Shown in pieces: positions 1 to 45,600 of a DNA stretch of 64,000 nucleotides; position 1 is the first letter of the stretch; each line of letters begins with the position of its first letter. The stretch is from Ramazzottius varieornatus. Taxonomy: Eukaryota > Animalia > Tardigrada. The translations under genes and the position numbers were made by a program. The DNA lies in assembly GCA_001949185.1 (NCBI GenBank), contig BDGG01000003.1:1811164-1875163 (forward strand). Reading direction: 5' to 3'. Under the pieces are notes generated by a model. It saw only the letters and a list, made by a program, of their open reading frames with translations, was not told the DNA's origin and searched no databases.

Positions 1-3000
1 GGAGAAAGTTGACTTCGAACAAGCCATTCTCCAGGTATTCTACTGGAACTCCGTAAGGAACATAGATACTGTATTCTCCCGATATCTCCGCGAAGCCTGA
101 TACCATGGCGCCACCTACGAAAAGTGCATGACGTACGGCGGATAGACGCATATGTATGGATGACGTACGTCCTGTAGGTGGCGCCACGAGTAACGGGGTT
201 CGCGAAGATATCGGCGGAATACAGTATACTCGTCCAGCGGTTAGCAGAGACGAGAATAGATTTCTAATTATCACGACAGTTATTCTGTTTTTCTTCGAAG
301 GACTTGGAAATGCTGCAAGTTAAGTTCGACAAGCTTACCCACACTTCGGATAGCTTCGAGCTTCTTCTAAAGTATGCCGAACAGATGATTCGGGAAGGTA
401 CTGCTTATGTAGACGATACCGAGCCCGAGAAAATGAAGGCTGAACGAGAGGAGAGGAAAGAATGTGCTAGCAGGTCCAATAGTAAGCAAAGACTTGAACC
501 ATTTTAACTAGCTTTTTCTCGCATGACTTTCGAACATAGGAGTATTTTGCCGTAGGTGTGGAGACTAACCTGAAGCTTTGGGAGGAAATGAAGAAAGGTA
601 CGAAGAAAGGTCAGCAGTGCTGTGTTCGTGCGAAGATCGACATGAAGTCCGATAACGGTTGCATGCGCGACCCGACGATCTACCGATGCAAACCACAAGA
701 GCACCCCAAGACCGGGAATAAGTACAAGTAAGCACAAGAGAACTCGGAATATTCGGGAGCCCAGTAAATGAAACGTACAAAACCTTGAGTGGCGCATGCT
801 GTCAGCCAGTAATAATGGAAACGTGCGCCACTTGCGCCATCTTGTACGTTTCGTTTGCCGGCCTCCTATTTTGTCTTTAAAATGGAAGACTCTCAATCAA
901 AATCGAGTGAAAATTTGTGTGGATGCTACACGAATGTAGGACTTCTGTGGAATTTTTATGGAGAATTTCGTGTAGGACATATCCAACGTATGACTTCGCG
1001 TGTCCCATCGTGGACAGTGTGGAAGGTGTGACGCACGCTTTGAGGACCACAGAGTACCACGATCGTGATGAGCAGTACGAGTGGTTCCTCGACCAGTTGA
1101 AGCTGCGAAAGCCGCATATTTACGAGTACAGCAGACTCAACTTGATGTACACGCTGCTTTCCAAGCGGAAATTGACGTGGTTTGTCGACCAGAAACTCGT
1201 TGACGGATGGTAAGAAAAGCTTATCCTTGTCAAGCTCACTTTCGCATTACCTTTCAAGCGTAACATATAAAAGCTATCAGTTGTATTACTTCTTAGGGAT
1301 GATCCTCGCTTCCCAACTGTGCGCGGAATCTTGCGACATGGAATGACGGTGGAAGGCCTGAAGAACTTCATCGTGGCTCAGGTAACCTTCTTCGAACTTT
1401 TTCACTTTCAAAACTCAAGATCGTTACCTTTTGTTGTGTGTTGAGTCTGGCTTAGGTTCACGAGATCGTTGTCTTAGTAGAAAACCTATCCAGGTAGTTT
1501 TCTGTTAGGGTAATTTTTGGTATTTTGTTTAGGGTTCTTCGAGGTCCGTTGTGATGATGGACTGGGATAAGCTTTGGGCGTTCAACAAGAAGGTGATCGA
1601 CCCGATCGCTCCTCGCTATACAGCCGTCCTCAAGTCCGACCACGTTCCAGTTTTCGTGTCTAAAGCCGAAGAGAAAGCCAACTCGGATGTGGCGAAGCAT
1701 CCCAAGAACGCGGAAGTGGGCATGAAAACAGTCTGGTATGGCCCGAAGATCCTCATCGACTCTGTGGATGCTGAGGTCGTGAAAGAAGGCGAAACAGTCA
1801 CTTTCATCAACTGGGGCAACCTGAAGATTAAGAGCCTCAAGAAGAATGGTCAAGGGAAAGTCGAAAGTATCGAAGCCGATCTGGAACTGGAAAACACCGA
1901 CTTTAAGAAGGTTCGAAAAATAATTTAGAAACTCTAGCAGACTCTTATTGTATTGTTCTAAGAACACCATGATTTCGCAAACCTGCGTACTCATGTACAG
2001 CAGTCAATCACGTTCATTTGGATGCGGGTGAATGGGAAAAGGACGACAGGCAGATAGCGTCAGAATGTCAGGAACCTGCGTACTTTGTTATCAGGGTACA
2101 ACCTTCACTATGTGTATGCAGGTTTCCGAAGGTGGTCGCACTTTCTGCAGCTTGATCGTTCTTTGGTTTTTTTGCAGACGACGAAGTTGACATGGTTGGC
2201 AGTGACGGACAAAGCTCCTCTGGTTCCCACGGTTTGTATTGAGTATGGGTACCTTATAACGAAAGGGAACTTGGGTAAGGACGAAGAGTGGAAGGACTTT
2301 ATCAACAAAGACAACAAAAAGGAGCAGGAGATGCTTGGTGATCCTGAGCTGAGGAACGTCAAGAAGGGAGACATTATCCAGCTTCAGCGACGCGGCTTCT
2401 ACATCTGCGATAAGGAAGCAAAGGGTGACGAGCCCATCGTGTTGCTGTACGTTCCCGACGGGAAGGAGACGTCGACGTCAGCGGAAGCCGATCTGAAAGC
2501 CAAACAAGGTACGTCTTCAAATTCTCTTTTGTACAATCGTTTCATACGAAAGATGTGAGATAAAGAGTAAGTTACTAATTGGGTGGGTTTGTAGAAGTGA
2601 AGAAGAGCGAGAAGGAGAAGGCTTCAAAAGAAAGCCAGCAAAAATCGTCGAAGGAGCCCAAGAAGGTTGCTTCTCAACAAAACGGAGTTCCCGAAGATGG
2701 ACCTGTAAAGAAGTCCGGTGAGGAGAGAAAGAAGCGGAAGGAGGAAGTGCAGGGTGATGGGAAGAAGGCAGCTGACGGTCCGAAGCAGGTCTCTGATGGA
2801 CCCAAACCGGTGGTGAATGGTGAGAAGAAGTCTGGTGACGGTGGTGGAGGTGACAAGAAAGACAAGAAGGAGAAGCCTCAGAAAGAGAAATCTCAAAAGG
2901 AGAAGCAAGGCGACAAGAAACAGGACGGTGGAGACAAGAAGAAAGCCGGTATGTAAACAGTTCGGCCTCTTTGAAAATTTTGTTGGCATAGACAGTAAAG

Positions 3001-5392
3001 TATACCTGCGTACTTACACGCCTTAGATTTATTTGGACTACGGTACGTAGGTTCATGATGAATGCTTGCATTGGTTCATTTCAGTATGAAAACTGATATC
3101 GCCGGTCTGTTTCAGTTGTGGATTGTCATTCAACATCTTGCGTTATGTTTTAGGTGAAGGTGGCGGTGGGGACAAGGGTGGTGGCAAAGGTGGCGAGAAG
3201 GGGAAGACCCGGCTGGGTATCGAGGTGAAGAAGGACGAGGACCTGTCAGAATGGTACGCTCAAGTTATCACGAAAGCTGAGATGATTGAGTACTACGACA
3301 TCAGCGGTTGCTACATCCTCCGTCCCTGGGCGTATTCTATCTGGGAAGAAATACAGAAGTGGTTTGATGCGGGCATCAAGAAGATGGGCGTCCAGAACTG
3401 TTACTTTCCCATGTTCGTCTCGCAAGCGGCTTTGGAGAAGGAGAAGGACCACATCGCTGACTTCTCGCCTGAGGTTAGTATCTTTCCGTCCATTCAGAAC
3501 TCATCTGCCGAAGTTCTCGTTGTTTCTTGTGCCATTATTCAGGCTTTTTTTCAGGTGGCTTGGGTGACCAAATCAGGAAACACCGATTTAGCCGAGCCCA
3601 TCGCCATTCGACCAACGAGCGAAACTGTCATGTATCCGACGTTCGCGAAATGGATCAAGTCTTACCGAGATCTTCCTTTGAAGATTAACCAGTGGTGTAA
3701 TATTGTCGTAAGTATGAATTTGCTTCGGGCCTGAGCTTCATGAACGAAGTTTAGCAGGAATGGACTGATGGACCGATGTGGCTTTTTGTAGCGGTGGGAG
3801 TTCAAGCATCCTCAGCCATTCCTTCGAACCCGTGAGTTTCTTTGGCAAGAGGGCCACACCGCCTTCGCCACACCCGAAGAAGCCAAGGAGGAAATGTACC
3901 AGATCCTCGACTTGTACGCTGGAGTGTACGAGCACCTGCTGGCGGTCCCTGTCATCAAGGGGCGGAAGACCGAGAAGGAAAAGTTCCCCGGCGGCGACAT
4001 CACGACCACCATCGAAGCGTACATTGCAGGCAGTGGAAGAGCCATCCAGGTATATTCTTCCTGAAGCTTAGCCAGTTCGCGTTCTAAAACTATTCATGAA
4101 TATTACGGTTGGCAACTTGCAAAATTCAAACGGTTATGAAATTCGAAATATGACGTTGAGATGGTGGGACGTCGGTAAACGGAACTCGGCTCTCTGTCCC
4201 GTAGCTGCATACGTGTAGAGTGTAGCTCATGCAAGAGCTCGTGTATGCAGATAAAATTAATGAGCAACCAGATTATTTCGTTCAGTGCCTTCTGGTCTTT
4301 AATAGTAAGCTTCGCACGATTTACTCCGGCTTTCACTTTGCAGGCCGCAACATCCCATCATCTTGGGCAGAACTTCTCCAAGATGTTCCAGATCGTCTTC
4401 GAAGATCCCACAACGGGTCAACCAAAATGCGCCTATCAGAACAGCTGGGGCCTCACGACAAGAACCATCGGTGTCCTGACCATGGTGCATGGTGATGACT
4501 TAGGCCTGGTCCTTCCTCCTCGAGTGGCTTCCATCCAGGTGCTTACATGTTTAGATCTTACGAAAAGGAAACCGGTGATTTGTACAGGTGAATGTATTTC
4601 ATAGGTTATCATCGTTCCTTGCGGTATGACAGCGAGCATGAAAGAGGACGAACGAGGGCAGCTGCTCGCGAAGGCGGAAGAATACAAGCAGAAGCTGATC
4701 GAAGCTGGCATCCGCGCCGAGAAGGATGTGCGTGATAACTACTCTCCCGGCTGGAAGTTCAGCCACTGGGAAGTAAAGGGTGTGCCTGTCCGGTTGGAAG
4801 TGGGTCCGAAGGATATGGCCAGTCAGACCTTCGTGGCGGTCAGGCGAGATACCAGTGCGAAAGTCACCGGGCTGAAAGAGGCCGAAGCAGTAGGAAAGAT
4901 AAAGGAGTTGTTGGATGATATCCATAACAACCTATTCAACAAGTAAGAAGCAGCTCGATTTGTTTCACGAATAGTCTGGATTCTAACTCCGCTTTGCAGT
5001 GCAAAGAAACAGCAGCAAGAGAATCTTGGCGTGGTCGACTCGGACTGGAAAGAGTTCTGCGACAAGCTAGACAAGAAGATGATCTTGATGATTCCGTTCT
5101 GCGAGGAGAAGGAATGCGAGGAAGTAGTGAAGAAGGAGAGCGCACGGTTAGTTACTGTGGATATTTTTTCCTAGTTTCCTCTGTGCGACTGAGTTTGTTT
5201 CGACGAATGAACGAGGGCTTTCTGTGCTGCAGGAACCAAGTTTCTGTGGAAGCTGGAGCTCCAGCCATGGGTGCCAAGAGTCTCTGTATTCCATTCGAGC
5301 AGCCCAAGAAGCTGGCACCAGGAACCAAGTGCCTGTCACCCGGATGCAAGAACGAGGCAAAGTCCTTCACACTGTTCGGCCGAAGCTACTGA
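1..5392 (+). CDS. EPRS1: Bifunctional glutamyl-prolyl-tRNA synthetase, multi-exon, 5' end outside the window
   Basis: Spliced exons give GluRS motifs ([77 protein letters not shown]). A K/G/E-rich linker follows, then ProRS motifs ([76 protein letters not shown]-terminal LFGRSY*). Introns checked are GT-AG. Confidence 0.97.
69..224. mobile_element. MITE of the pogo/Tc2-like family in an EPRS intron
   Basis: Imperfect TIRs CTGTATTCTCCCGATATCTCCGCGAA / TTCGCGAAGATATCGGCGGAATACAG with TA on both sides. Reverse complement of 25443-25599. TIR matches the ends of the element at 48328-49970. Confidence 0.9.
786..834. repeat. Family A intronic palindrome core (27-bp spacer), EPRS intron
   Basis: tgagtggcgca-N27-tgcgccacttg, with degenerate outer arms about 755-868. 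Confidence 0.85.
1981..2123. repeat. Family B module, two units, EPRS intron
   Basis: acctgcgtac-N29-ggatgcgggt (1981-2029) and acctgcgtac-N30-gtatgcaggt (2074-2123). Confidence 0.75.
3004..3052. repeat. Family B module, EPRS intron
   Basis: acctgcgtac-N29-gtacgtaggt. Confidence 0.7.
4203..4252. repeat. Family B module, EPRS intron
   Basis: agctgcatac-N30-gtatgcagat. Confidence 0.7.
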
Positions 5393-6027
5393 GTCCCAAC
5401 TTTTTTATTTGCTTCTTATGTTAGCTTTTTATACGCCTCTTATCTTTGCTGTTCGCGTTGCTGCTTTTGAACTGTTGCTGCTACCTGCCGTCGAACTATT
5501 TTTCCCTCATCGATGCGTTGTTCATGCGATGGTCAATTGATCACGCCAACCAGGTACCGTCAGATATGTGCTCCTGTCCATCGTTAGTTTCCACGTGAAA
5601 TATCCTGCAGTAAATCTATCGACTTGGCGATCGCATTCGAGCGAACGAAAGCTCAGGGAAACACATAACGACTCGTCGTACGGTCGTGGAAAGCCCATAG
5701 CTATTCGCGTTGATTGGAAGCTTGATTGACTTCACTTGCCTCATGTTTCTTCACTTTCCAAGTCGTATCGCGGCAAAAGCGGCGTAGCTCCCGAAGAGAG
5801 AAGACGACGTTTCGCTAAAACGCTTTATAACTCGAAAAGCATGTCGAGACACAAAGATTTCCAGTTCATTCTTTATTCATGTCCCGCATGGAGAAGGGAA
5901 ATTATGAGATGGAAAGCATGACTGGCGCAGGCTTCTGAACAGCAACATCGACGATACCATCTACGCTTGTAATGTCTAGATAGTCCCGAGTTTAACTCCA
6001 GCCTGTTCAGCTCCCAGAATGATATTT

Positions 6028-6372
6028 CTAATCCAGCTGCAACAAGAGCAAAGTGCCAGAATGATAATGTTTCCGAGCGCAGACAAAAAGGAGCATTCTT
6101 CTACGACACTCTCTTCTCACCTTCTTGAATCCGATCTGGCTGGCGTTTTCTCTGAAACACTGCCTGCAGACGTTCAGGCTGTACTTTCTTATGAGACCAT
6201 GTCCATTTCCACATACCCGGCTACAAACAAATACGATGAATGAGGTTAGGAAGACAGCTGTCCAGAAAGGATGATCGGCAGAAACAGGAAAGGAACAATC
6301 AACCACTTACCATGCGCGCGATCCCGGTCCGAACTTCCTCGGATGCTGGAAATAGATGTTCTTGTGACCCAT
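6028..6372 (-). CDS. RPS29: 40S ribosomal protein S29 (uS14), 3 coding exons
   Basis: Spliced translation [56 protein letters not shown]. Confidence 0.97.
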
Positions 6373-7096
6373 CTTGGCAGATTCGTAGAACAGAGGCTCC
6401 TTTCACCTAAATCCTTCGTCAGCTGGGGAGAAGAGGAGATTCTGCGCAGGAATGAACGAGGTAGACGCTGGAGAGTCGAGGTCTTCCTTCTGCTTTGAAC
6501 GAACTACGAGTCTAAGGCCCATTCGGAAATCGGTGAGATGATTTATTTCCCGGTGATTTATTTATTTATTTATATCGTACACCATTATGACATGACATAA
6601 CGCACAACATGGCATATAAACCGACATGGTGACGTCATGGTACTGCGTGACGGACCAAGTTGAACTTGAATTTTATCGACCTCGTCCTTGAAACTGCTTC
6701 CGCCTCAAGACACCGAGAGGCTTGTGATAGCTAACTAAGCATTTACAAAGAGACTTGAGAACCACGATCAGGATTATCGATATCATGGCCGGAAACACGC
6801 TACAACGAGCAGGATTCCTGCTGCAGGAACAACCAAGAAAATCGAAAGCTATGACTCGGGAATCAATGCGTATTACCCACAGCCCAGCCAAGCTTCAAAC
6901 AGTTCCGGGTCTTCCGCAGGATCAAATTAGAATCGAAGACAAAAAACCACTATTCACTAGCAAGTGCCAGGACCCGCTGCAAATTGAGGAATTCTCAAAA
7001 CAAGAATAAATGCTAACCAGACATCAACAAGGAAGTTTATCACAGACTACAACCTTGAACGAGAAGCACAAACGATAAGCAGCCACTCTTCTACAT

Positions 7097-7869
7097 TCAC
7101 CGCTTTTCCACCGCCTTAAACCGAGCTTCTGAAAAAAGACAAGATCACCGCTGAAATGAAAACAACCAATTAAATACTGCCAGACTTTGAGGGAGCACAG
7201 TTACCAAGTTGCTTTGCATAGGTATCTAATCGGAAGATAGTCCGCTCCAGTTCATTAACCTGAGTTTCCACCAAGTCTATCCGATCCAGGAAAGGCTTTA
7301 TACAGCTAACTGTAACGAAAAACATCATCTTATAGGTCGGAATTGTTTCAAGATACCACCAGTAGAGAGTAAGCACTACGAATTTAATTCATACATCGGT
7401 CGTTGGTGGTCTTGAGGGATGTCTTCGCGTTCTTCGTAGTGACGAGGAGCTGAGCATACTTTTCCGTCGACACGTTGTTCATTTCTTGAATAAGACGGTA
7501 ATCTTCCGCAGTCACTACAAGAGAGATGTGGTTTGAAATATCCGAGAGTTAATGAAGCGAAGAAGTACCCAGCTGAAAAGAACCCCCCAAGACCCCTCCG
7601 CTGAGGGGGATTAACTTTTTCCCCTCAGCCATTTAGCTCTGCAAAAACCATCCCATATGCTCGTGCATTCGCCACTATTTAAAGGCACCTTCGAATTCAC
7701 TCTTGAGGTATTCGGAAGTCCTTCCGAGTAGGTTTTTGTACAGTCTTTGGATTTCCTCCATGTCGAACACCGAGTCGACCCCCTCGGATACGTCCGAGAC
7801 AGCAGGTACCCGATCTGGCTCGGACGGATGACCCTCTATCTTTTCAGCTGTCTCCTGTCGTCTCTCCAT
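7097..7869 (-). CDS. BLOC1S2: BLOC-1 subunit 2-like coiled-coil protein, 4 coding exons
   Basis: ...RTSEYLKSEFE/VTAEDYRLIQEMNNVSTEKY.../IKPFLDRIDLVETQVNELERTIFRLDTYAKQL/EARFKAVEKR*, matching the BLOC1S2 pattern. Confidence 0.85.
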
Positions 7870-9113: not shown

Positions 9114-12100
9114 ATGACAATAATGGATGTGGAGCAGCAGGCTGAAGCCGGAGCGCAGCTGGTCGACAAGATCCACGGGCCCCACACGGTCGACTCGCCA
9201 CCGCCGTCTTCTGGCCAGCATCTCGACAATCTCGTCTCATCGTCAGTCTCGTCGGATAACAGCAACAGCACTCACCATGACGAAGGTGAAACCCAGCCGG
9301 AAGAACCTGTGGAGGTGGATAGCAACAAAGTGGAGAACGAGGCCGTGAAGGAAACAAGGATAATCACTGTTGAACCACCAACTGAAGAGTTACCTGTCGC
9401 AACATCTTCGTCTTCGCCCCCACCTCTTGCTATCTCAGAAGAAATTACGGAAGAGAAACCAGAAGACACTAAGACGAAAGCTGTACAGAGTCCACAGAAC
9501 TCACAAGCTGAAGTTCAACCAGAAGAAACTCAACCGGAAGAAGTCAAACAAGAAGTGAAAGCTGAACAAGTCAAGGATGAAGCGAAGAACGAAGAAGCCG
9601 TGGATGCTTCTGTTGAATTACCTGTTGTTCCTCCGCAGAACGTTGAGGAGGTTGAAAAGCCAAGTGAGCTTTGTTTGCATAAGAAAATAAGCTTTAGAAG
9701 TTGACTAGCTTTTTCTTTCTAGGAGAAGTTGCGCCGGTCGCTCTGCCTTACGTCCCATCGCCTCCACCATCAACAGAGAGCCGAGCTCCGGTCATCAACG
9801 GCATCGTTCAGCCATCTTTCATGCTTCCGCCTGGCCGAACTCCTGTCCTGACCAACCAGCTTAGGTTTCTTCAAAACAACGTCATCAAGGCTATGTGGGC
9901 CCATAAGTTCTCGGCGCCGTTTAAAGCACCCGTCGACGCTGTTCGGCTGAACTTACCGGACTACCACACCGTCATTACGCACCCGATGGATATGGGGACC
10001 ATCAAGAAACGCCTCGAGAACTTCTGGTACGGGTTTTATGTAAAGTTTGAGTAACGAGGCAAGAGTAGCGAATCGGTCATCGTCTATCTGCTCTGTACGT
10101 CACCCATGGGGAGCTAAGGGGTGGTTGAATTACGAGTCACGCCCCCTGTTAGAGGGGGTGCCCGGTTTGCGCTATTTGCCACGAATCGTGCATTCGAGCT
10201 GCAGAAAGATTTGCTCTTAGTCCTTTCAACTTGTTTTTTCATGAGGAATGTTTGGTGCTCTTCAGGTATACATCGGGGCAGCAGTGTGTTGAGGACTTTC
10301 GTCTGATGTTCAACAACTGCTACCGCTACAACCCTCCTGGCCACATCATCTACCAATGGGCCCAGGAGTTGGAAAAGAACCTGAATTCTCGCCTTTCCAG
10401 CCTTCCTACGCCTGAACTGATCGTTCCGTTCGCCACCAAAAGCAAGAGCAGCAAGAAGGCACCAGCTCCGAAGCGAGCAGCCAACCCTGTCGTCAAGAAC
10501 GAAGTCTCTTCTTCCAACGGTGAACGTTCGGCCTACAACGCACAGGTGGGAATAAACCTTGCCAATGCGAGTCAGTCCAACAAAGAAGCGCAATCTTCTC
10601 AAGCTGGTCTAAACTCTGCTGTAAGGGCTTACTTGAAATAGTGGCGTCTTTTAATGTTGGGAGCTACTCGGGAACACCCGACGAGATTGATTTCCCAAGT
10701 GGCGCACGTTCCGGCGTTGTTGGCCGAAAGCGTACGCCACTTGGAAGAACTATCTTCTGCGGTTGAGCTTCCTTACAGTTTCATAATTTTTCATTCGGAA
10801 AGTTTTCAATGTTGTAATTTACTCTCTTTAGCCCGTCTTTCTTCGTAATGCTGGTGGTCCTTCCACGAACGAACCACCCATTATGCCCCAGCCCACAGTG
10901 CAGCCGACGACGATGAAGGGCATACCAAGCACCAAGAAAGGTGTAAAGAGGAAAGCGGACACGACCACCCCGTTAATGGAGGCACCCATCTCGTTTCGAC
11001 CTTCCCTTCCGCTTACACCTCAGAGTTCCGTGGGCCAACACCACAGCAAGCGCACAATCAAGGCTCCCACACGAGACCTACCCGACGAAGTCATACCGCA
11101 TAAGATCAGCAGCAAGAACAGGCCGCCGATGTCAGACGCTATGAGGTACGTCTAAACTTTTCCATCAGAACACCAGAATCCAGATGTTTATGAGCAGATG
11201 ACTTGAAACCAGATTGATTCGCAAGTGACACACGCTCATGGCCATGAACACTGCAGACGTGCGCCACTTGGGAAAACGGTGTGGTTCAGTTCGTTTGCCC
11301 GCGTCTCATACTGCCCTGCTAACTTGACACTGCTTTCTTTAGGCACTGTTCGAATATCCTGAAAGAACTACTCGGTAACAAGCATTCCGCCTATGCTTGG
11401 CCCTTCCGCAAGCCGGTGGATGTAGCAGCGTTGAACTTGAGAGACTACTTTGACATTATCAAGCACCCGATGGACTTGGGGACCATCAAGGAGAAGATGG
11501 TTAACAGGGAGTACAGCACGGCCAGGGAGTTCGAACAGGACGTCAGGCTGGTCTTCACCAACTGCTACCGATACAATCCGGCCGAGCATGACGTCGTCAA
11601 GATGGCCCGTCAACTTCAGGTACCAAATCCTCGAGCTGAAAAATAATCTGGATGGATTATTATGGTTGGGCTTTGTGTTCTGTAGCAAGTCTTCGAATCG
11701 AAGTTCGCACAACTGCCGGAGGAGATTTACAACGCGCCAGTTCCGTCGAAACCTTCGACGAGCAAGTCGAAGAAGCGACCTCGCGGAGACGAGACGGATG
11801 CATCGTCAGGAGACGAGGAGGATGGCGAAGACAGTGGAACGGACTCCGACGAGTCTGATGATGGGAAGACTGCCAATTTACTGGCTCTACAACAACAACT
11901 GGCCAAAGTAACTACTGAAGTATCTGTGAAAATTTTTTGCGTGTTTCTAGAATTCAATCCAAAATCTTTAAATGGAAACTCGGCAAACACGCTTAACAAA
12001 ATTATTTTCCCAAGTGGCGCACGTTTCCGGTGCTATCATCTGAAAATGTGCGCCACTTGGAACAACGATCTTAGCGAGTGCGCCCAGGTCCCAGATGTTT

Positions 12101-13810: not shown

Positions 13811-15755
<1,945 letters not shown>

Positions 15756-25599: not shown

Positions 25600-25733
25600 T
25601 ACTGTAATTGCCAAACAAGACGATAAAATAGTGCGGATGGTTGAATACAAAAGTTAAGCTAAAACTTTGCGAACTGTGATGCATCAGCCAAGTTACAAAA
25701 GGCGGTAAAATTCAAAATATGGAGGCTGTTAAA

Positions 25734-32017: not shown

Positions 32018-32320
32018 AAGGAATAAATTATGCCCTCGTACTGATCAGCGTCCAGCCAAGCACATGGTCGGTGACGAGCCGTGCGGGTCCTGACCGGACC
32101 GATTCCAGGCCAGTCGGATCCGGAAGTAAAATTTCCTCGAACTTTATTATTGTGGCTACTGACCATCAAATACCTTGCAGTCTCCCCTCCATCGTTACTG
32201 GTTAACATGCAGTACTGCATCTGACTGTGTCAAAAAACCCCACGCTTAAGTCCCAAACAGGCTGGGTACGTACGGGCTCAGCGAACCTTCTACATTCCAG
32301 GTCCGGATCCCACAATATAT

Positions 32321-33091: not shown

Positions 33092-33187
33092 GGCTTCGCT
33101 GGTTCCCTGGCTTGAACACGGACCTCACACCGACGGCGAAGATAGAACCTGGACAGCTTTCTCCGTCCACCGGTTACCTGCCGGTAC

Positions 33188-33195
33188 TTTATATA
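33188..33195 (-). promoter_or_regulatory. Candidate TATA box of the PAN/apple gene
   Basis: TATATAAA on the minus strand about 100 bp upstream of the ATG at 33091. Confidence 0.45.
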
Positions 33196-33626
33196 CCAAG
33201 GACATGCGCTGCTTGGAATTGACGGCCGGGGGCGATACTGGCTAGGCCAGTCCAGCCTATGCATAGAGGACATTCTTTGAATGCCGCCCTGCGTTTCACC
33301 TTGATTCGCGGAATGCATAGACTGACGAGAGATAATTTATTTGTCAGTAATCGAAGGAAAGAAGAAAGAGCTAGTAAAATTCACATCAAGAAAAGTTCGA
33401 AACAGGATGGGTAAAAGACGCACCATTATAACTTACTGCAGTCTAAACGAAACTTTTCAGTACACGTATCCCCTATAAGGCTAAAATTTTATGCGCGATG
33501 TACTCGTACGAAACAAAGAAAACTACATGCAACGGCATATCTGAGGATATAACATGGTGTAACGGGTATTTCGTTTGACTGAGCTCTTTCACTAACGAGT
33601 TCCTGTACCATGTTTGAAGTAAAGTA

Positions 33627-36600
33627 TCACACAAAGCCAAAGTTCTTCGTCTTGATGGCTAAGAGCAACTTGGACCGGATGATGGGTTTGGCGGAGTACA
33701 GCGGGATGTACAACCTCGAGATGCACTACGAGCAAGAAAGAAAAGTCTGAAAATCCCATCAGTGGTTGGAAGAAGTTGCACTGCTTACAGTGTTAGCCGT
33801 GGGAAGATGGACGTCGTCGGCCGGCCGGATGGTAATGGAGGGTAAAGGCGCGAAGCCCGCCTCACTAGCTGGCATAGCTGAACTTCCGGTCCAGAAGTAC
33901 AACTGGGAAAAAGTACCACGTTACCACCAAATCGAACAAGGAAATATACCAGGGACGTCGGCGAACTACTTGAACGCGTATTTCCCAGCTGGCGCACACA
34001 TCAGCCAAAAACAATGCACCGGTGCGCCACTTGAGATAACAACCATGTTCAGTTCGTTTGCCGACGTTTCAGCTACTTCAAACCCTTACCAGTTCTTGCT
34101 TCTCATCGGGGCTGAGTTTATCCACGGTATTCCAGAACCAATGTTTGAACTTGGTTTTGTCCTGAGTCTTGTCGTTCGTTTCGTCCTGCCAGTTAGTCCA
34201 TGAAGCCAGCTGCTGGATGTCGATGGCACGATCGACACCGTTCAAGAGCAACCGGAAGTCTTCCGGCATGACGAGTTCCAGCGCGTCACTTCCGATCACT
34301 TCATGCACTCCTCGTTTCAATGCCTGCGCAAAACACAAACGCAAGAACCATCACGGAACAATCCCGCATTGTTCTCAGTATTCTCGGGCTGTCAAATACG
34401 TACATCAAGGGCTTTCTCCACCACTCGAAGCATCCTGGCTTCCGTCGCTAGCTTGACGAAGTCGTAAATGTTGTCCCGCGTTACTGCACGTTCGCGTCCA
34501 TTCGACTCGAGTTCCAACTCTTTATTACCCTGAGAGAGACAAGAACTCAGTCGTGTCCTAATTCTGGCTGCATAGAAGAAAACCCTTACTTCTTCTACGG
34601 GGACATCGATCGAGAAGTACAAGTACAGGCTCTCCAGTTCCTCATCGCTCATGCCATTCTCCACATCGACCACCATCTTCCTCAGCGTTTCGAACATGAC
34701 TGGATCGTGGAAAGCAAAGTCACTCCAGTTGACCTGCCTTCCCAGAATGTGCTTCACGGTGGCCCGCGTAAGACAGATGGGAAGAATCTCGCCTTGAAGC
34801 AAGGCCAGCCCAATCAACCTGCAAGATACAAAAGACCATCAGTCCAGTCATGTCATATTACATGACACGCTATCAGCTGGTCAGAATTACATGCCAAACG
34901 CTATGACATACAGTACATGTCATTTCAATGGAGCTTGGTGCGTCATGTCATATGATATTACATAAACGGATTATGACACGACGGCAATATTACCTTCCAA
35001 CATTCTTGAAAGCGGTCAGTCTGGCTGCCGAATTCTTCCCGGGTCGCACAGCATAGATGCCCGGTCGACCAGGTTCGTAGAAGAGCGGTTCGTCATCGTC
35101 GTTCAGCTTCTCATCGTGATTGACCCCAGTATCGCTCTCTTTCGCCGGGCTCTTGGCAGCGGGTACCTGAGCCGCTGTCGGTTGGTACGAGTAGTCTGAT
35201 GGCATTGCCAGAATACCATAGTCTGCTGAATGGTACACGGCATCTGGGCCCCGCTGGCTCACTAAGGCCTGCATGGCCATGTCGACGCGGGCTGACAACA
35301 TCTCGGGGTCCGTCAGGATTCTTTCTAGCGTGCTCATGTCCAATTGCATCAGCATTCCGGTCACCTGCAAAGAAACCATCGATGAAAATTCCACAATAAT
35401 GTCTAACAAAAACACTTTCAGTTATACATCGTGTTTGTCAAGTTAATCGCAGCATCGAAAGCCAATGCCATTATCCTTCTTCACCTGCATACACTGAACC
35501 GCACGGTTGCTGCAAAAAACAAGTTTGCAGGTTCACGCCGCGATACATTCAAGCAGAATCAAATACCTCCATACAAGTGTCAGTGCACATAATACGGTGC
35601 GCGAGTAGACCTGAGGATGGTGTGGTTTCACCACACCACACCACACCGAAAAAACCCACTCTTTTTGGTTTCGGTGTGCTTGAAACACCAAATCGAAAAA
35701 TTGGTGTCCGAGTCACACCGAATTTGCCGTTTCGGTGTCTAGGAACACCACATCACACCAAACCGAAAAACTTTTGGTGCACCAGATTTAATGAGCTCCC
35801 CTCTGAGCGATGGTTTTCGCGTGCTGGTAAGGTCGTCACCAAGCCTAGAAGTTCACTAGATAGTACGATCGTGCAAGTTTCGATGTGTTTGAAATCTTGG
35901 TAGTTTTTTGAGTTTCCTACAGCGCAGTTCGATTTGTCGATGACGGATTAATAAATTGTGAATTCGCTCTTTGAAACTTTTTTCGGTTTTTCGATTTGGT
36001 TTGGTGTGGTGTACCGAAAGAGTGGTGTCCGAACCACACCACACCGGAAAAAGTGGTGTGGCTTTCGCACCGAAAAACCAGTTTCGGTGTGGAGAAGCAC
36101 CGAACCGAAAAACACCACACCACACTTAATCACACTTTTCTCAGGTCTATGCGCGAGTATGCAGGCAGATGCCACGATGCGGATAAAGGGCGAGAAACTC
36201 GTCGTGAACCTGCATACACCTGGCCTCATGCTCATTACGACAACCGAGTATGCAGGCTGGGAAGTAGTGCAGTAGTAGCACAGTACATCTTCCGGTTTTT
36301 GAGTGAATCAACTAGATGATTACCTGCTGGACTGTGCTGGCGCTCATGCTGGGTCGAGCACTTGCAATGTTCCTCTGCACTGCTTCGGCCATCTCGGCTC
36401 GTTCCGCCGACATGGCATGGCGATGTGCGCTGCCTCCACCCGGTCGAAAGGGAGGTGCGTTCACATCAGGCCAAGTTCGGCTGGCGCGAGACTCGAGGTC
36501 CAAGACGTCGCCTTCAGAGATAGTGCGCCGACTGTGGACGCTCTCACGCATGAAGCGCAAACGAGTAGTGTCAGCTGGTGGTATCCAACGGACACGTTCG

Positions 36601-39600
36601 GTGTGAGCGTGCGAGGCTGGTGGAGGAATGACGGGAGCTGGTCGGTCCAGCTGCGGAAGCTTCTCGGTCTGAGACGACAAGGCCTAAAACAGTATCAACT
36701 GAACACAGTTCTGGAAAACCGGGACAACCAAGCCCTGACGTCGGCAAGTGAACTGAGTATCGTCACTATCCCAAGTGACGCACGTTTCTATAGGCTGAAA
36801 GTGTACCCCACTTAAGAAAACAAACGTCTTCAAGTCACAACTTACCTCTCCGATGGCCGTGAAGTAGCTTCGGGCCACGCCATTTCCCTCGCCGGGTTCA
36901 TCGCGGAAAGTCACCTTCAGTTTAGAACAGGCATGTGGACCGGGCAAGCTGCATCGCTTGTTGAAAAAGACGTTAAGCAGCGCGAATGACTCGGGTATGA
37001 GGTCTTCTCGAGGACGTGCAACCTAACAGAAGAAAAAAACAGCAGTTAGTGACCCAGTCCTCTATGAAGAGAGAGCTGGACGCACGTTGAGGACTAAATC
37101 CCGTTGTTGAGAAGTCCGTAGTCGTTCCATCTCCTTCCTGAACTTGGCTTCCCTTGTTGGGAAAGGCGCGATATCCCCGATCAACGAGGCTGGTTCGGTG
37201 CCGACGTCTTCCGAGAAGACTCGACTGAAGATGTCCAAAGTTTGGCGCCATCGACCAAGCACCAAATCTTGAGAGATGAGCGCTCCAAGAATCTTCCGCC
37301 TATACCAATAAACAATCAGTCAGTCGAGCAAGGCTGGCGAACGACAAGTGAAAGATCGTTGTATCAAGTGGCGCATTTTTTCATTGTAATTACCAGGTAG
37401 TATGCGCCACTTAAGATAACGATCTTGTAGGTTTCCTCTGCCTCCAAAATATTCTCGAAAACTCGGAATAACATTCCAAAATTGAGCAAGATTTTACTAG
37501 TTATGATAGTCTGATTGAGGCTTTAGCTTACCTTGGTGAGACTCGATTAGCATCGACTGATCGATCATCCGCCGATTGCGCGCTCGTGCCTTCTTCGGCG
37601 TTGTACTCATCGTCCGAGTCCGTCCCCGGAGTCCACAAGCGACTATCTTCCTGTCGGTTGGTTAACGATAACCGAACAGGTGGACTCTTGAAACTAGCCG
37701 GACTGCCACTAGGGATCTCCGAGGAGTAATCCACCAGCTTAGCACCGAAGAGCTCTTCGCGCCTTACGCTGGGTATCAGGAGCTGTGGTCGATCAGCTAA
37801 AGGCAGACTTTCTGTCAGAGACCTTTGAAAGGGGTCGGGTTGTGAGCTACCCAAGTAGCACATCGACCGAGATCGACGGAAGAACGGGTGTGTTCGAGTG
37901 GCCTCCACGGGCCGCGAGGATCTTTCGGAGTCCGTAAGTTTCGCCGGCGAACCCAACTGCAATAATAAAGATTACTCTTCAAATTCACGTGATGTGTAAA
38001 CAGCTTTATAAGGTTCAAGTCATAACTTCGGTAAAAACGTCGAAAAAATCATTTTTCCAAGTGGCGCACGCTGTCGGCGAATAACAATCTAAACTGTGCC
38101 ACTTGGAAATAGCGTTACGAATTTGTCTGCAAAGCTCGTATCTGCTATTTGTTTGATAGATATCTTGTTTTATTGATCGAGGATGAATGTTACGAAATTA
38201 ATTGGCGAAAACGAAACAATTTCGAATGCAGAATTCTTTTAAGGAGTCTCACAGTAGGGAAGTCTTTGGCGAGGCTTTCCATGCCTTCCTTGACGCGGTC
38301 TTGCCACGTCACTGAGGTGGACTTTGCTCGATCTCTGGCTTCTTTCTTCAGGTCCAGCAGGATCGAAGCGTCGGTGGTCACGCGGACATAGTTGATCAGA
38401 GCGTCGAAGATGTAAGCCACGTGTTTCAGAGCTGAGACGTCGACAACCGGAAGCGAGTCACCGTGCTCCGAGTTGTGCGAACGCATCAACGAGAGGGCGT
38501 AGTTCAGGAAATCAGAACGAGCAGGCGCTGAACCATCTACAATAATCATAACCATAAGTACTTGCTCCGATTTAATGCACAATATCTGTTATTATTTATT
38601 CATCTATGGATTTTCCTAGGACTAGATTTATCTTTTGAAAATCCTCGAAAGTAAATCCTAAATTAGTCGGAGTCTTTGAAAGAAAAGAACTTACCTCTGG
38701 TTGTTCGTCGCTGAGAAGGTAAGTGCAAAGAATGCGAGCTTCGCAGCAGCATTTCCTCGTCGTGATCGCGAGAAGAGGCAATCGACCGATCACGTTGCGG
38801 GTGGGCCGTCACCACGTCGCTCGAATGGTACAACGCGTACCCGAACCTCAGCTGGGCTTCCGTTGAATCAAGGATGTTGCAGACCCAGCTCCAGGTTCTT
38901 TTCAAACTTTCGTCCACAAAGTTCTGGAACAAAATGACGAAGTAATTTTAGTAATCGTTCAGCGAAATTTCAACAGCTACCTACATACAGCGACCTTTAG
39001 GCATACTGCGATCTACATGAATGCAGGTACTCGTACTTGCAACAGTAGCAACGAATTAATTCTTCAATGGTTTCAAGACCAGGTAGCCTACCTCAAGTCG
39101 ATCCATCTTGCTGCTTTCAATCTGAGATACATCAGTATCTTCAGAACGAACTGAAGGGTCTCGAAGTTCAGCCATCAGCTCCGCCACCTCTCGAATGATG
39201 ATACCGTAAGACCTAGCCAGGTTGGAGAAGGTGGTGTTGAAGGAAGTACTGCTTGAAGAACTTCCTTCGACCTTGCGGACTGCCCCGGAGGTGTCGACAT
39301 ACACATAACTCCCTCCTCCTGAAAGACAACCAACCAGTTCAGAAACTTTTCAGCTTCGTTGTGTAATTTCAATTCGGGAGCCCAATAACCAAGGGCGTCG
39401 ACAAGATTGTTCTCCAAAGTGGCGCACATATTCAGTGTTACTGGCCGGAAACGCGCGCCACTTGTAAAAACTATCCCGCCGAGCTCGCATTCATCCATCA
39501 AGTCTTACTTGACGAAGCCAATGGATGGCCGCCAAACAAGTCGCGAGAAGACCGTGGAGCATTTCGAGAGGTGGACGACTGGGCTGCCCACTGGATACCA

Positions 39601-42600
39601 GGTGGTAGAGTAACACCAGTAGAGGCACGCGCTGGGTAGATGGAGGACATGGAGGGAATGCCATGACGGAAGAGCCCGCCACCGCGACCTGCGTCCATGA
39701 ACATTGGATACAAGTGCTCGTCCTCCCCATCGATCGAGTTACTCTGTCAGCAAAGCATAAACCATCATCAACCTTACGAATACTCAAAGCTGAACAGTTT
39801 AGAAGATCTTACGCCATCGTCCATATCAACTTCTTCACTTTCGGCCTCGTCTTCTTCTTCGTCGTCCTCTTCTTCGTGAGTTCCCGTTGATGAATGTTCA
39901 GAATCCGAGTGGTTGTCTTCGGAGAAGGTTTCATGAGCCACGCCTGTAAAGACGGAACCTTTTAAGCTATGTAGCGTGTTGAAAAGGAGAAACAACATTG
40001 ATACTCACTGTCGGGATCTCGGTCGTGGGTGTCCGCGTCTCGTAAGGCAGAGTCGCCAAACCTAGGCATGTTACCATTCTCCGAGTCTGTACCGTCCGAG
40101 TCGGGATCTTCCTCGATGTCCATGTCACTCATGTTCGCCAGAACATCCATCTCATGCAACGGCTGGCCATGAGGCGGCGAAGGTATCGAGAAGATGGAAG
40201 AGGGCTCGTTGGCGGCCGAAGCGTTGAAGACTGGTGGCGTACGAACTCGAATGGTACCGGTGGTGCTCGCGCGATCACTCAGTCTCCTGTCCGAACTCTG
40301 AAAGATAACGCGAATCTAAACATTCGGGCGAAAAAATATTGTATCAGCTTAAACTTACATCTGGCGGAATGACGATGTCAAATTCATCTTCAAAAGGGAT
40401 GGCGTGGACAGCGTCCATGTCGGCATCCCTTCCCTGGCTGCTGGGTACGGACATCAGCGGTTCCCTGCGTCCTCTTGCTCGGCGTCGTTCAGCTAAAGGT
40501 TCCACGTTAAAGACCTCATCGCTCGCTCTTTGGCTTGTATGGTCAGCTACAGCGTTGGAGGTAGAAAAGTTGGCGCCGGGCCGAGCTACTCCAAGACGCA
40601 CCGGAGCTATCAGAGCTTCTGCGGCTTCGCAGAGCTCTACCACTGAAGACATGGGTAGCCGTCGGAAAACATCACGAATCTTCTGTACTGGCTTCGGAAT
40701 CGGCAGGGATACACTGCAAATATTCGTGATGTCACTGACGTTCATCTGGAAGGTCGACCAACAAAGTTTACAGTCTTTCGTCCACCTCATACACAAACAC
40801 CAATGTTAAGTGCCTAAACACGGTATGCAAGTGTGTGCAAGATAGGCAGACTGTACACTTTGCACACACTTGCATACACCATATCGTTCATATCCTACGA
40901 CCTTCAGTATGCAGGTCTATGCAAAAGTGTACTTGCCGGTCTTTGGCATTTCACTGGCTTTTGAAAGAAGAAATCCATGACGACAAAGCACTACGTACGA
41001 TTTATTTTTGGTGTTGACACTGAGAGAAGTTTCCGCCGTTAGGACGACGAAGACTCGGACGATGGAGCGGATGAACCTGCTGGTCATTTCTTGCGCTTCA
41101 ATGCTAACATCCTGGCCTTCGCACAGGTCGCCAGCTGCGGATCGAACCGTGTTAACGAAGACATCGATATGCTCGGCCTTACACTTCGTCAAGAGGATGT
41201 GGATGAAGCGGTCCAGCAGCGCTGTCCCACTTTGGTAGCTGAGGTGAAACTGGTCTTCTTGTACTGCCGTCGAGAAGGTGGCCAGGCGAGGGTTGGGATA
41301 CCCCGTCATCAGAGTAGTCTTCAGGGCGTCGTAGTTGCCCAGAAGTAGCGTCAGAGCTAGCTGACAGAATCTAGGCGGGTTCAACACTGCAAGAAACGCA
41401 AGCTAAATTACACACAAAATTCAAAGTTTCATTGCATGTTATATTTTACGGTCTTGACGATCTTCTCCTCGGCCAGATTTCAAGAAGCGCTGCTCTCCAA
41501 GCTGACGGCCAACGGTGTAGACCAAGTACTGTAGCAAGTACTCTCCCCTGCAAAAAAGACACATCTGAACTCAGTTCCGGCTGATATACGTTCATCAGAA
41601 AGTTGGAGCAGTTTCCGTACTTGCTGTTCGGTCGGACGACCAAGTCAGTGGACATGCTGGCCAATTTGGTGAATAGCTCCAGCCGGAAGTTCTCATCTCC
41701 AGAGACCAGGCTCTGGCACTTGCATTTCTCCCAACAGTCACAGTACGCTGTCGGAGATGACCTCTTGATTTTACAATCGTGGCCGCGATGACAAGTTCGC
41801 GCACATTCGGTACAGCAACACAAGGTCCCGGTCAGACCACAAGTCCGACATTCCCAAACGTCCTGCTGGATGTGACCTGCAAATAAATTTACAATTACTT
41901 CAATCAATTAATTTACTCTTTTTTAAAATCTGGAGTTTTGCTGAACTAGTCTGTTCGAAAAGCAAGAACGTCGACAAGATCGTCTCTTCAAGTGGCGCGC
42001 ACTTCCGGCCAGTACGATTGTAAACGAGCGCCACTTGGGAAAAACGATCTTGCGAGTTCTTTTCCATCTGAAAACCACGGTTGAATCTTGCTTACGTGCA
42101 CCCGTCCACGTATAAGTGCAGACGTCGTTCAAGCACAGCAGGAACAACGGTGAGTCGTCTGGATTGGACCCAGCAGGGTACAGAATGTCCAAGACGAGCG
42201 AGTCGACCGTTCGAGCGTTGACTGAAGCTTGCTTCCCGGTAGTCAGCTCGGGATAAGACTCTTTGATGGCAGCGAAGGTGGCGTCTAGAAGAACCAGTGC
42301 TGCTTCGTACGAACGAATCAACACTGCGTACATGAAGGGCGTCATGCTCATACAGTTCCTGAAAAAGAAATCTCGTCAATCGATCCTTTTCAGCTTCGGT
42401 CGAAATACAGCTGGAATGTCAACCTTGGTACTTGGGAGCTCGGCAAAGAAACTCGACAAGACTGTTTTCCACAAGTGGCGCACGCTTTCGGTACTATGGC
42501 TGGAGAACTGCACCACCTTGCTGAGTATATTTGCCGAGCTCCTGTTTCATCTAATTTCCTAAAATCGTTTCTTACTTTCCAGCCATTAGTTCAAGAAGGA

Positions 42601-45600
42601 CTTTTCGAGCGCCACGGTGTTGGCAAATCTGCTTGGTAATTTCCAGCGCTCGTTTCGCGCGAGCTGGTCCGCTCTCTTCCGGTACCGTGTCGTCCATTAG
42701 TAGGGTATCCATGCCTTCTGGTTGCACCGGTGGTTCGGGGTTAGGTGGTCGATAACGTTCGCTGCCTGATCGTCCGCGAGCCAGATCTACCCCTTCACCG
42801 CGAGCTCGACGCATGGCTTCTACCATGTTCCCACGACGGATCTTTAGAAGCTGATGGATGTGGTCAGGTCCAACACCAAAGTCTTCAGCCAGAGGAAAGT
42901 CCAGAAGGTCTTCGTCTCGAAGAATGTGGCGACCGAAGCCATGATCTGTGAGGAGAAAGTCGTCACATAAATATAGATTTCGTTTAAATACCGTACTTTC
43001 ATTTTTGTCTTGTCGTAATGGATTATATTTTCGAGTCTCTGAAACTGAATTTTATTACCTGGGTCATTTCGAGACGCTTGTAGATTTTTCGGGAAGTCTT
43101 TCCGTGGTTGTGGGGCACACACTGCCGCACAGACATGCAGGATGTTACGGTTACCATCCGCGCATTCCCGGAGGTACTTCTCAAACAGGGCACCAGTGGA
43201 CGAGAGAATCTGCGTCACCTTCTCACCGTCCACTTCAAAGACGCTTTGGACCAACGAGTGCTCATGAACGACAAAGGCCACAGCTGCGCAAGGAAACTTG
43301 CTGCCTTGTCGGCTAGGCACCGTGATCGTCCGAATGTATGTGCTGAGTGAGTAGACGGGCGAGGAGTTGAGGGCGTGAGGAACCCGCAGGTTCCCATTGT
43401 TGTCTTTCTCCAGCGGGTAGAAGCACTTGTTACCGTCTAACATCATTGTAAAACCATCCTACGAAACATAAGCTCAAAATCTAATGCCGGGACGATTACT
43501 ATGGTATTTGGAATCTCGTATGACAGATCAGCAGATGCTAATAAGACAATCTTCAGGCACCTGCATACACAAAACCACGGCAAAGGTATACTAGCCGTGT
43601 ATGCAGGTACATTGGGATACAACCTTCGTGTACCTACACACAACCCAATGGATCCTTCAGTGCGCGCAAGTATGCAAATGCTTGATACAACTGTGTTTTG
43701 CTTGCTGCGAATGTCAAGTTTCTGAGTTTCTTACCCGACCACCTGTCGCTAGCCTGATGTTACATTCCGAGTTGCCCAAAATGTACTTCGCTTCACACAG
43801 AAACCTGCTCTGGGAGTCCTTCTTTCCGCTTTGGAGGTTATAGTTGACCAGCGACAGCTTGCCCGAGACGCCCAGGACGACCATCTGGATGCTTCGAGTG
43901 TTCGGTGCACAGGCCAGGACCTTCTTGCAGCTGGCACTGATCCGCAGCTTCTTCGGCGTCTTCTGGACAGAGTCAGTATTCTTCGTGGAAGTGCTAGTCG
44001 ACTGCGCACCACGATGCAGCGCTAAGTCACTCTTTCTGATACACTTCGAGTCTTCTAATCCTCGAGAAGAGCCAGTTTCGGAGCCCGGAAGATCCTGAGA
44101 GAATGTCACGTAAGCGTGATCTTCCGTCAGCTGGAAGATAAGAAGAAATTCGTATTGAAAACACCGACGAACAATTCAGACGAAATTTCGTCAGCCAGAC
44201 AACCGACATACAGTACCTTTGTGATCTGGCCGATCAACGGTGCTTTGACGCCTTCGTCTATAATGACGACATCTTTCGGCTGCCAGGATTCCGTCACGAA
44301 CTTCGTGTCGACTGGCTCAATTTCCGATGGACGCTTCGCTCCAACGTGGTGCTCGACTGGTCGGACATCTTGGTTGGAAGCCGAGCCCTTTACTGGAGAG
44401 ATGGGCTTTCCGGTGGCTGGATTAAGTAACCGGAAACGAGCGACACTCGAAAGGTCCCACACTACAAAACAAAAACGTCTTCATCGCCGGTTATAATCGG
44501 AATGTTCGAGTAACTTACTGTTGTCCAAAAGCTCTCCACACTGTAATTCGCCCCAAATGTTGACACGGAAGCCGATGGCACCAGGCTGGTAGACTGCACC
44601 GGTTCGATACACTACCGTGGAACCAACTTGCAGGTCACCCATGGACGACGGCTGCTTCGGACGTTTGGAAGGCTTCGATCGAGTCTTCTCCCATAAACGA
44701 TGACGATAACCCAGTGGCATCACACCCCTTAGAAAAGAATACAATATCACAAGGTTCGTCGAATGGCAGCGATTTCGTATCATTCAAATGAGTTCGACAG
44801 CCTTATCGGAAAACAGTTTTGGATCATACTTACCACCAGTAAAGGCATCCTGACTCGACACGGACGCAGGTATACAGAAGCGAGACGTTCACTTCCAAGA
44901 CAGTTTCCGTTTGGAGCTCTTGGAACGAAGTCGCCGGATGTTCTAACTTCTTCGCCAGGACAGACATGCTTTCATCAACCATCGTTGCGAGCTACAGACA
45001 GAAGGAGGAAAAGGATAAGCTACAAAATTAATGGTGACCGTCGAGAAAGTATGAAGAGACCTACCTTTCCAGACTTGGTAAGGAATGTGGCGCGGATACT
45101 ACACACGGCCATCATGGTGACTTGCTCCCTGTGCAGCCCCAAAGCGACCGACTTGGGATGAGATCCAATCTGGTTGACGGACACTTCCATGTTGTCTAGA
45201 GTCGCGCCAGGCTCGAGTTCTAAGTTCAGCGAAGGAGTCTCTGCGTAAGCATGTGGTTCTGACCACTGCCACTGATAGATCTGCCCATCTTCCCCGAGGC
45301 ACACCAGCTCGGAGTGCATGGCACCTATCGCTGTGAACTTCGGAACAACCCGCGTTTCCTAAAAGCAAAATACGAATATAGTACTGCTTATTTTGTAGAT
45401 CTATGCAAACCAAACAATAGAAGCGACATGGGCAAATGATTCAAGTGGCGCACACTTTCCGCCACTGACAATGAAAACGTGCGCCACTTCAATTATCGAT
45501 CAGGTTCAGTCCATTTGCCTCCATCCCAGCTGGAGTTTGCATTTACCCAATCGGGGAACTTGAAGCATTCGATGTTATCGCCCAGGACAGGCGAAGCAGT

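Follow-up and report, generated by a model that had tools for sequence, protein, structure and literature searches.

Inverted box pairs at a constrained 29-30 bp spacing in introns of the tardigrade Ramazzottius varieornatus: candidate relics of palindromic mini-elements

The bacterial elements known as REP, BIME and REPIN consist of two short inverted palindromic motifs around a spacer that keeps its length but is less well conserved in sequence than the motif. In the shortest class of Paramecium internal eliminated sequences (IES) conserved short inverted ends, a free interior and a quantised length are combined, and in alpha satellite a transposase-derived protein binds the CENP-B box and so preserves it, as the remainder of the repeat drifts. 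Here we describe Family B, a family of inverted box pairs in a 64,000-nt stretch of DNA of the tardigrade Ramazzottius varieornatus (hereafter the window) and in the genome of this animal. A unit consists of two inverted 10-bp arms, ACCTGCATAC and GTATGCAGGT, around a spacer that is unrelated in sequence from unit to unit. We rate the family among the miniature inverted-repeat elements. Our tentative reading, held with less than even confidence, is that the units are relics of palindromic mini-elements of which the box pair and its 29-30 bp spacing would be under selection as a DNA dyad site read by a protein.

REP, BIME and REPIN elements are bacterial, extragenic and mobilised by RAYT transposases, and their spacers can be aligned, whereas Family B belongs to an animal, lies in introns and has unrelated spacers. 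The CENP-B box is part of a satellite array, unlike Family B, which is dispersed in introns as inverted pairs at fixed spacing. The likeness to Paramecium IES ends and to the recombination signal sequences (RSS) of V(D)J recombination, namely short end motifs, a free interior and a length fixed by a complex, is one of logic only. An RSS holds heptamer, spacer and nonamer in one signal, whereas Family B is a dyad pair that stays in the assembled genome and avoids exons. Intronic miniature inverted-repeat transposable elements (MITEs) and fold-back elements, represented here by a second family (Family A), are likewise short and intron-rich, with inverted arms and thousands of copies, and they likewise lengthen otherwise minimal introns in the manner of an insertion. 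Family B has terminal inverted repeats, formed by the 10-bp inverted arms and a TCAT-NN flank on both sides. Unlike MITEs, however, it has neither target-site duplications (TSDs) nor a shared interior nor young copies, and it is the 10-bp box pair that is conserved rather than the outermost termini.

Genome-wide counts were made on an assembly of 55,842,812 bases in 200 contigs; the published R. varieornatus assembly is given as 55.8 Mb in 199 scaffolds with an N50 of 4.74 Mb (PMC5034306) and as 55.83 Mb (PMC5531438). The arm pair was searched as ACCTGCATAC-N-GTATGCAGGT, with the reversed pattern as control. At gaps of 20-45 bp, 243 perfect pairs were found as against none for the control. Over gaps of 0-63 bp the total was 245, and 231 of these (94%) had a spacer of 27-32 bp; there were 2 pairs at 0-19 bp, 6 at 20-26 bp, 6 at 33-45 bp and none at 46-63 bp. 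The distance histogram thus has the sharp peak that a preliminary description of the window had predicted, with its mode at 29-30 bp. These two lengths also predominate among about 50 listed units and in a sample of 43 Family B units from 310 kb, 15 of them picked for perfect arms, from which the figures for flanks, polarity and context are drawn. In the genome there are 1,854 copies of the perfect 10-mer arm and 68 of its control, leaving ~1,790 real arms. Since 486 of these (27%) lie in perfect pairs and so have a perfect partner, divergence is estimated at ~12% per arm site and the number of units at ~3,300. Unpaired arms are rare: of 19 perfect arms that do not belong to the ascertained units, 17 face a second arm with 0-2 mismatches across 27-32 bp, and the arm counts leave scant room for many unpaired ends. 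Family B is therefore large, with about 3,300 copies, most of them intronic.

About 60% of the units in the 43-unit sample form doublets with a start-to-start period of 71-93 bp, and no triplets were seen in that sample. Linkers vary from 15 to 40 bp overall. In 49 loci with perfect inner arms, where linkers were searched to 40 bp, their lengths were bimodal, with 23-24 bp in 16 loci and 31-40 bp in 20. An atypical compressed array at G000:C14:1117007-1117105 has four perfect arms with gaps of 23, 18 and 18 bp. A CRISPR-like array was considered and rejected, as the repeats are inverted, occur as singles or doublets only and are joined by these variable linkers.

The inverted pair of 10-bp boxes first recognised stands, but the half-site proved longer than had been described. 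TCAT (or TCAY) is conserved outside each arm at a distance of two bases (TCAT-NN / NN-ATGA), so that the half-site is TCAT-NN-ACCTGCATAC and the whole unit, these flanks included, measures ~62 bp. Conservation within a unit is unequal: when units are ascertained by one arm, conservation is ~89% in the partner arm and 60-75% in the TCAT flank, but no better than random in the spacer. The contrast between partner arm and spacer agrees with the earlier proposal that this is not a neutrally decaying repeat. The spacer sequence is mostly free, as had also been claimed, but not wholly so, since position +1 is A in 48% of half-sites, while at +8 C accounts for 51% and G for just 7%; the remaining spacer positions are without notable conservation.

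That the spacers are mutually unrelated was borne out by an all-against-all comparison, in which the best ungapped matches equalled those of shuffled spacers, with the exception of one segmental-duplicate pair, and in which no young subfamilies were seen. No interior sequence is shared among copies, and identity to a 'consensus' is at random level. When searched against the genome, as had been suggested, four spacers and two linkers from two doublets matched only themselves, which gives no sign of recent copying. The folding energy of the spacers equals that of shuffles and of neighbouring 30-mers, their composition equals that of the flanks and local introns, including a sense-strand skew of T over A, and neither flanks nor spacer ends show unit-specific complementarity beyond the consensus. 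The preliminary description had also reported that TSDs are absent, and indeed no direct repeat of 2-8 bp above chance was present at offsets of 0-13 bp outside the arms. An interior GAACC/GGTTC word resembling a tRNA B box was dropped as a candidate (17% of half-spacers as against 11% of controls). The excepted pair, L019:3952-4000 and L025:253-301, is one unit that was duplicated with its flanks in inverted orientation on the same contig, ~120 kb apart. It shows 1 difference per 29 spacer bases, and because the flanks match too it represents a recent inverted segmental duplication and not transposition of the unit.

All 14 positions in the window at which a unit had been reported do carry the module. 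Eleven are clean, with at most 4 mismatches per 20 arm bases and spacers of 28-30 bp, whereas two are degenerate and one is split. In the window 14 copies of CTGCATAC, the 8-mer core of the arm, were counted where 1.1 are expected, and the full pattern with a gap of 26-34 bp does not occur in shuffles; a chance origin of the window units is excluded. The units are:

1981-2029, no strand assigned: clean Family B unit, first member of a doublet, 29-nt spacer, 3 arm mismatches
2074-2123, no strand assigned: clean Family B unit, second member of this doublet, 30-nt spacer, 1 mismatch, start-to-start period 93
3004-3052, no strand assigned: clean Family B unit, 29-nt spacer, A7>G compensated by T4>C in one pair, another pair changed to G-T
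4203-4252, no strand assigned: clean Family B unit, 30-nt spacer, 2 mismatches
15207-15257, no strand assigned: degenerate Family B unit, doublet with 15291, 5 arm mismatches, ~31-nt spacer
15291-15340, no strand assigned: clean Family B unit, 30-nt spacer, 2 mismatches
35483-35532, no strand assigned: clean Family B unit, 30-nt spacer, within the 959-bp intron 35365-36323 of a minus-strand gene
35565-36166, no strand assigned: split Family B unit, spacer interrupted by a ~520-bp insertion
36208-36257, no strand assigned: clean Family B unit, 30-nt spacer, in intron 35365-36323, the 5' splice site of which lies 66 nt upstream
38979-39028, no strand assigned: clean lone Family B unit, 30-nt spacer, midway in intron 38924-39091 (168 bp), 63 nt to the 5' and 55 nt to the 3' splice site
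40784-40832, no strand assigned: degenerate Family B unit, 1-nt deletion in the 5' arm
40868-40916, no strand assigned: clean Family B unit, doublet with 40784, 29-nt spacer, in the 285-bp intron 40714-40998
43559-43608, no strand assigned: clean Family B unit, the only perfect one of the window, 30-nt genome-unique spacer
43632-43679, no strand assigned: clean Family B unit, doublet with 43559, 28-nt spacer, 4 mismatches, period 73

The 3' arm of the unit at 40784 and the 5' arm of that at 40868 form an 18-nt perfect inverted repeat. The ~520-bp insertion in the unit at 35565 (window 35620-36140) has 11-bp inverted ends (CTCAGGTCTAY) and a 6-bp direct repeat (TCGCGC), and excising it together with one TCGCGC copy returns a 30-nt spacer to the unit. 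The insertion is rich in short GGTGTGG / CACACC and CCGAAA-type repeats and is overlapped by RNA contigs of other copies, which are ~2% different.

Family A offers a comparison within the same genome. Its core, CAAGTGGCGCA-N26/27-TGCGCCACTTG, forms the centre of a ~130-bp palindromic repeat. There are 45 copies in 310 kb, 22 of them in the window, and 42 of the 45 have a gap of 26-27 bp.

Window positions 10696, 12011, 14319, 23498, 37365, 38058, 39416, 41989, 45442, 61166 and others: Family A copies

Identity of Family A copies to their consensus is 88-92% in the cores, 71% in the interior, which can still be aligned, and 57% in the outer arms. Outside the core the mean pairwise identity is 0.47 and the maximum 0.68, low values from which it follows that Family A is old as well. 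Like Family B it is intronic and forms doublets, with a period of 72-82 bp (72-93 bp over both families), and its orientation relative to the predicted gene strand shows no bias (13:9). By analogy, Family A looks like a younger version of the kind of element to which Family B belongs, and Family B looks like the same kind with all but the box pair erased. Since the Family A cores are better kept than the rest of the same copies, constraint specific to boxes does exist in this genome.

On the reading that we prefer, Family B would be an old family that no longer amplifies and that descends from a palindromic repeat, fold-back or MITE-like, built like Family A. What survives of each copy would be the two inverted boxes TCAT-NN-ACCTGCATAC and the distance of 29-30 bp between them, the rest having drifted to unrelated sequence. 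The box pair would be retained as sequence on double-stranded DNA for a putative protein that binds two inverted half-sites at a set distance, either as a homodimer or as two monomers; the natural candidate would be a DNA-binding factor of the host, perhaps one derived from a transposase. The length of the spacer would matter and its sequence would not. In favour of this reading we count that arms are nearly always paired, that conservation within a unit is unequal, that the spacing is sharp and that signs of recent copying are lacking. We also count the decay of the arms as sequence, the matching layout of Family A, the inverted repeats in all longer introns of an RNA-supported gene and, if the strand asymmetry in the spacer is mutational, the better retention of arm cytosines (see below). 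A common fold-back origin, purifying selection on the boxes, recognition by a protein at the DNA level and any host function are what we infer from these patterns. The preliminary description had proposed a geometric recognition signal of a dimer or ruler type, comparable in logic to RSS. Conserved boxes, conserved distance and nearly independent decay of the arms (see below) fit a dimer or ruler, while the RSS likeness stays one of logic, and a purpose-built signal is not what Family A suggests: having the same architecture with a recognisable interior, it points to a repeat-element origin.

The location of the units was examined with contigs from four public runs, which are probably RNA (~50% word share), and with a crude self-trained dicodon model, validated on one gene, that supplied the gene strand and context of most units. 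The RNA contigs define a minus-strand gene across 35300-41100 with 12 GT-AG introns. Six Family B units lie in three of these RNA-supported introns (959, 168 and 285 bp), at least 55 nt from either splice site. Five introns of the gene measure 61-69 bp and the other seven at least 158 bp, and in each of these seven lies some inverted repeat, be it a unit of Family B, one of Family A (degenerate in one case) or a repeat of another kind. Two introns of ~160 bp, 36684-36845 and 38537-38694, are without a clean Family A or B unit; one has the degenerate Family A unit (TAAGTGGGGTA ... TGCGTCACTTG) and the other a different 8-bp inverted repeat (GGATTTTC-N21-GAAAATCC). In the exons at window 36300-41100 one RNA run differs from the assembly at ~17 positions (roughly 0.7%) while the other three match, which suggests that a divergent strain or a close relative bears this species name.

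With the dicodon model, 29 of 37 classifiable units are flanked to either side, at no more than 400 bp, by coding segments of the same strand; roughly, the model assigns about 75% of units to short-intron contexts. Where the sequence had not been selected for arms, the same context was found for 11 of 14 units, as against 16% of random non-coding 50-mers. Introns make up 22% and intergenic DNA 43% of the R. varieornatus genome (PMC5531438), and introns are ~34% of the non-coding DNA. The model therefore indicates that Family B is enriched in introns about two-fold. The claim that units occur only in introns was for the most part sustained, by RNA for six units and by the codon model for most others, but 'only' was too strong, as about 8 of 37 fall off the short-intron pattern.

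This distribution raises the alternative of an intronic stem-loop in pre-mRNA, in which the arms enclose a 30-nt loop and pair over 10 bp, or over as many as 16 if the TCAT/ATGA flank is included. The hairpin might be read by an RNA-binding protein or an RNase, or might serve to compact additional intron sequence where default introns are 61-69 nt long. We consider this possible but doubtful. It is in keeping with the mostly intronic location, with the distance of never less than ~55 nt to a splice site in the three RNA-verified introns, and with the predicted minimum-energy fold, in which the arms pair in 77% of units. A structural role, on the other hand, would not require an identical stem sequence in 3,300 copies, and no Rfam family matched at gathering score in the 64-kb window. 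In the four RNA assemblies, which are blind to small or unstable RNAs, no contig or splice joint ends at any unit. The 3' arm does contain CAG|GT, a point for the stem-loop, but it is followed by N-N-A-T-G-A, with no G at +5 and mostly no A at +4, whereas the 12 real 5' splice sites of the RNA-supported gene are mostly GTAAG or GTGAG, with two GT(A/G)CGT. A recursive splice site is thus unsupported and was rejected.

A selected RNA stem and a pair of DNA boxes differ in how their arms should decay. Covariation was tested on whole-genome counts in which all remaining arm positions were required to be perfect:

Pair 5/6, G-C to A-T: 69 single changes, 13 changes in both arms, 4.9 doubles expected if independent
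Pair 7/4, A-T to G-C: 43 single changes, 6 changes in both arms, 1.9 doubles expected if independent
Control, same two transitions, cross-arm at unpaired positions: 11 doubles, 6.1 expected
Control, same two transitions, same arm: 9 doubles, 6.1 expected

Uncompensated single changes far exceed compensated ones (69 vs 13 and 43 vs 6). The doubles at unpaired positions show that heterogeneity in age alone inflates doubles ~1.6-fold, and paired doubles are ~1.7-fold more enriched than these controls, a weak excess that nevertheless leans towards the stem-loop. On the predicted sense strand G·U combinations outnumber A·C by 18:6, as expected of an RNA stem, but unpaired Family A interiors show a C>T plus A>G excess of 54:38 on the same strand. 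Given this measured mutational asymmetry, the G·U excess is mostly mutational and not significant. Nor is the wobble strand linked to the polarity of the interior motif (24 vs 19 in a by-eye tally of the 69 single-mutant units). Because single changes outnumber compensated ones and unpaired doubles are nearly as enriched as paired ones, the arms appear to act as independently conserved sequence boxes that decay nearly independently, rather than as a selected RNA stem.

The interior does show a strand bias. The scored interior motif is oriented 16:3 relative to the predicted gene strand, as compared with 76:64 for pseudo-spacers of the same introns, and GG at -9 to -7 before the sense-strand 3' arm is present in 19 of 31 units, its mirror CC in 4 of 31. 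Both speak for a role in RNA. At spacer position 8 the sense 5' side has C in 10 and T in 15 cases, and the mirror side G in 19 and A in 5. This purine/pyrimidine symmetry means that strand-biased C>T decay may cause part of the bias. Sense-strand arm cytosines have turned into T at only 3 of 124 sites; if the asymmetry at position 8 is mutational, neutral C has largely decayed while arm C was kept, which implies strong constraint on the arms. If the interior polarity is instead intrinsic, the units are oriented relative to transcription. On either reading of the strand bias Family B would not be a simple neutral relic. The stem-loop explains the intron and strand biases better, and the decay pattern worse, than the protein-read dyad does.

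A further alternative, which we regard as unlikely, treats the units as neutral relics whose spacers were unique from birth. Two inverted end copies would have been set ~30 bp apart by a mobile-element process, enclosing pre-existing or filler DNA; all positions would since have drifted equally, by ~11%, with the spacing reflecting the geometry of the insertion machinery and no selection at work. At ~11% arm divergence, and with roughly 1 indel assumed per 10 substitutions, ~0.3 indels are predicted per 30-bp spacer, which fits the narrow spread of 28-31. Such a birth would also suit spacers that are unique in the genome, lack young subfamilies and have the composition of the local intron down to the T over A skew. 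It is harder to reconcile with Family A cores that are clearly better kept than the rest of their copies, and with the asymmetry at position 8, which calls for a birth in a set orientation unless C>T decay was heavy and passed over the arm cytosines. We also know of no transposition mechanism that leaves two inverted ends around 30 bp without a TSD.

The combination of conserved short inverted ends, a free interior and a quantised length (231 of 245 perfect pairs at 27-32 bp) recalls a geometry-dependent signal for recombination or excision. A domesticated transposase would synapse or cut the boxes, and some cells would lose the spacer or carry it inverted. Independent decay of the arms is what protein sites should show. 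However, the units are present in an assembly of the whole animal, avoidance of exons would be needless if they were precisely removed from DNA, and the orientation of the interior motif is fixed relative to the gene, which argues against inversion. We consider this explanation very improbable.

We give equally little credence to small-RNA or guide minigenes, in which the constant arms would be handles or promoter-like signals and the variable 30-nt part the product, in analogy to crRNAs or to the 21U-RNA minigenes of Caenorhabditis elegans. The latter are likewise found at thousands of loci, often intronic, each with a short sequence that is diverse and lies at a set distance from a constant motif. 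Their motif is one-sided and drives a capped small RNA, whereas that of Family B is two-sided and inverted. In its favour, Family B presents a diverse 29-30-nt segment at a fixed distance from constant motifs at thousands of loci, and this length is within the range of PIWI-interacting RNAs (piRNAs); piRNA-like small RNAs of tardigrades have a 26-nt mode and a 5' U bias (PMC4323106). On the other side, spacers begin mostly with A, or with T when read on the sense strand, without a clear 5' U signature. The reported tardigrade piRNAs are clustered and of the ping-pong type, and the four spacers searched have no second match in the genome and hence no target at the sensitivity of BLAST.

A broader variant would make the box pair a spacing-dependent processing signal, with a putative complex that reads the boxes ~40 bp apart, centre to centre, and processes the 30 nt between them. 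In some cells the DNA might thereby be cut, excised or marked, or the loop might be freed as an intron-derived small RNA. This we judge quite improbable; if true, it would make Families A and B an animal counterpart of IES- or RSS-like signals in thousands of introns.

Several points weigh against the protein-read dyad relic that we prefer. No TSD was found within the offsets searched (0-13 bp), and the origin from an element rests on the analogy with Family A. Binding of a dimer at the DNA level does not by itself explain the ~two-fold intron enrichment; this enrichment and the gene-strand bias, including the GG preference, would follow more naturally from a role in RNA, towards which the small excess of paired doubles also leans. 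A simple dimer would have to span a long distance, as ~40 bp separate the centres of the half-sites. The case for selection on the arms comes from contrasts within units rather than from conservation across species, and the gene-strand calls come from the crude codon model checked on one gene.

A metagenome scan for the module gave 9 matches, none with the flank features of the family. These were unrelated longer palindromes of other organisms, plain inverted 10-mers without the flank, or a sequencing-adapter artefact. The last, at L038:9149-9199 (OBIC01000563.1), is a perfect arm pair around an apparent Illumina adapter at the extreme end of a GC-rich contig, and is likely an assembly artefact unrelated to Family B. 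In literature searches nothing but primers or constructs, as judged by titles, matched the sequences of the arm and of the Family A core, and searches on tardigrade repeats, MITEs, inverted repeats, piRNAs and small RNAs gave no description of Family A or B elements. The genome papers give bulk repeat content only (PMC5531438).

If the boxes are truly selected, ~3,300 intronic sites together with a comparable Family A would constitute a large class of cis-elements in a model extremotolerant animal, a class undescribed in the literature searched and read by its spacing and not by the sequence of the spacer. Once identified, the reader would bring to light a domesticated transposase system or else a new process, at the RNA or DNA level, that is tied to introns; genome editing has reportedly been achieved in this species. 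If the units are neutral, they would point to a novel way of making inverted ends around unique DNA. Either way, elements of this kind account for the seven longer introns of the RNA-supported gene, beside its five of minimal length.

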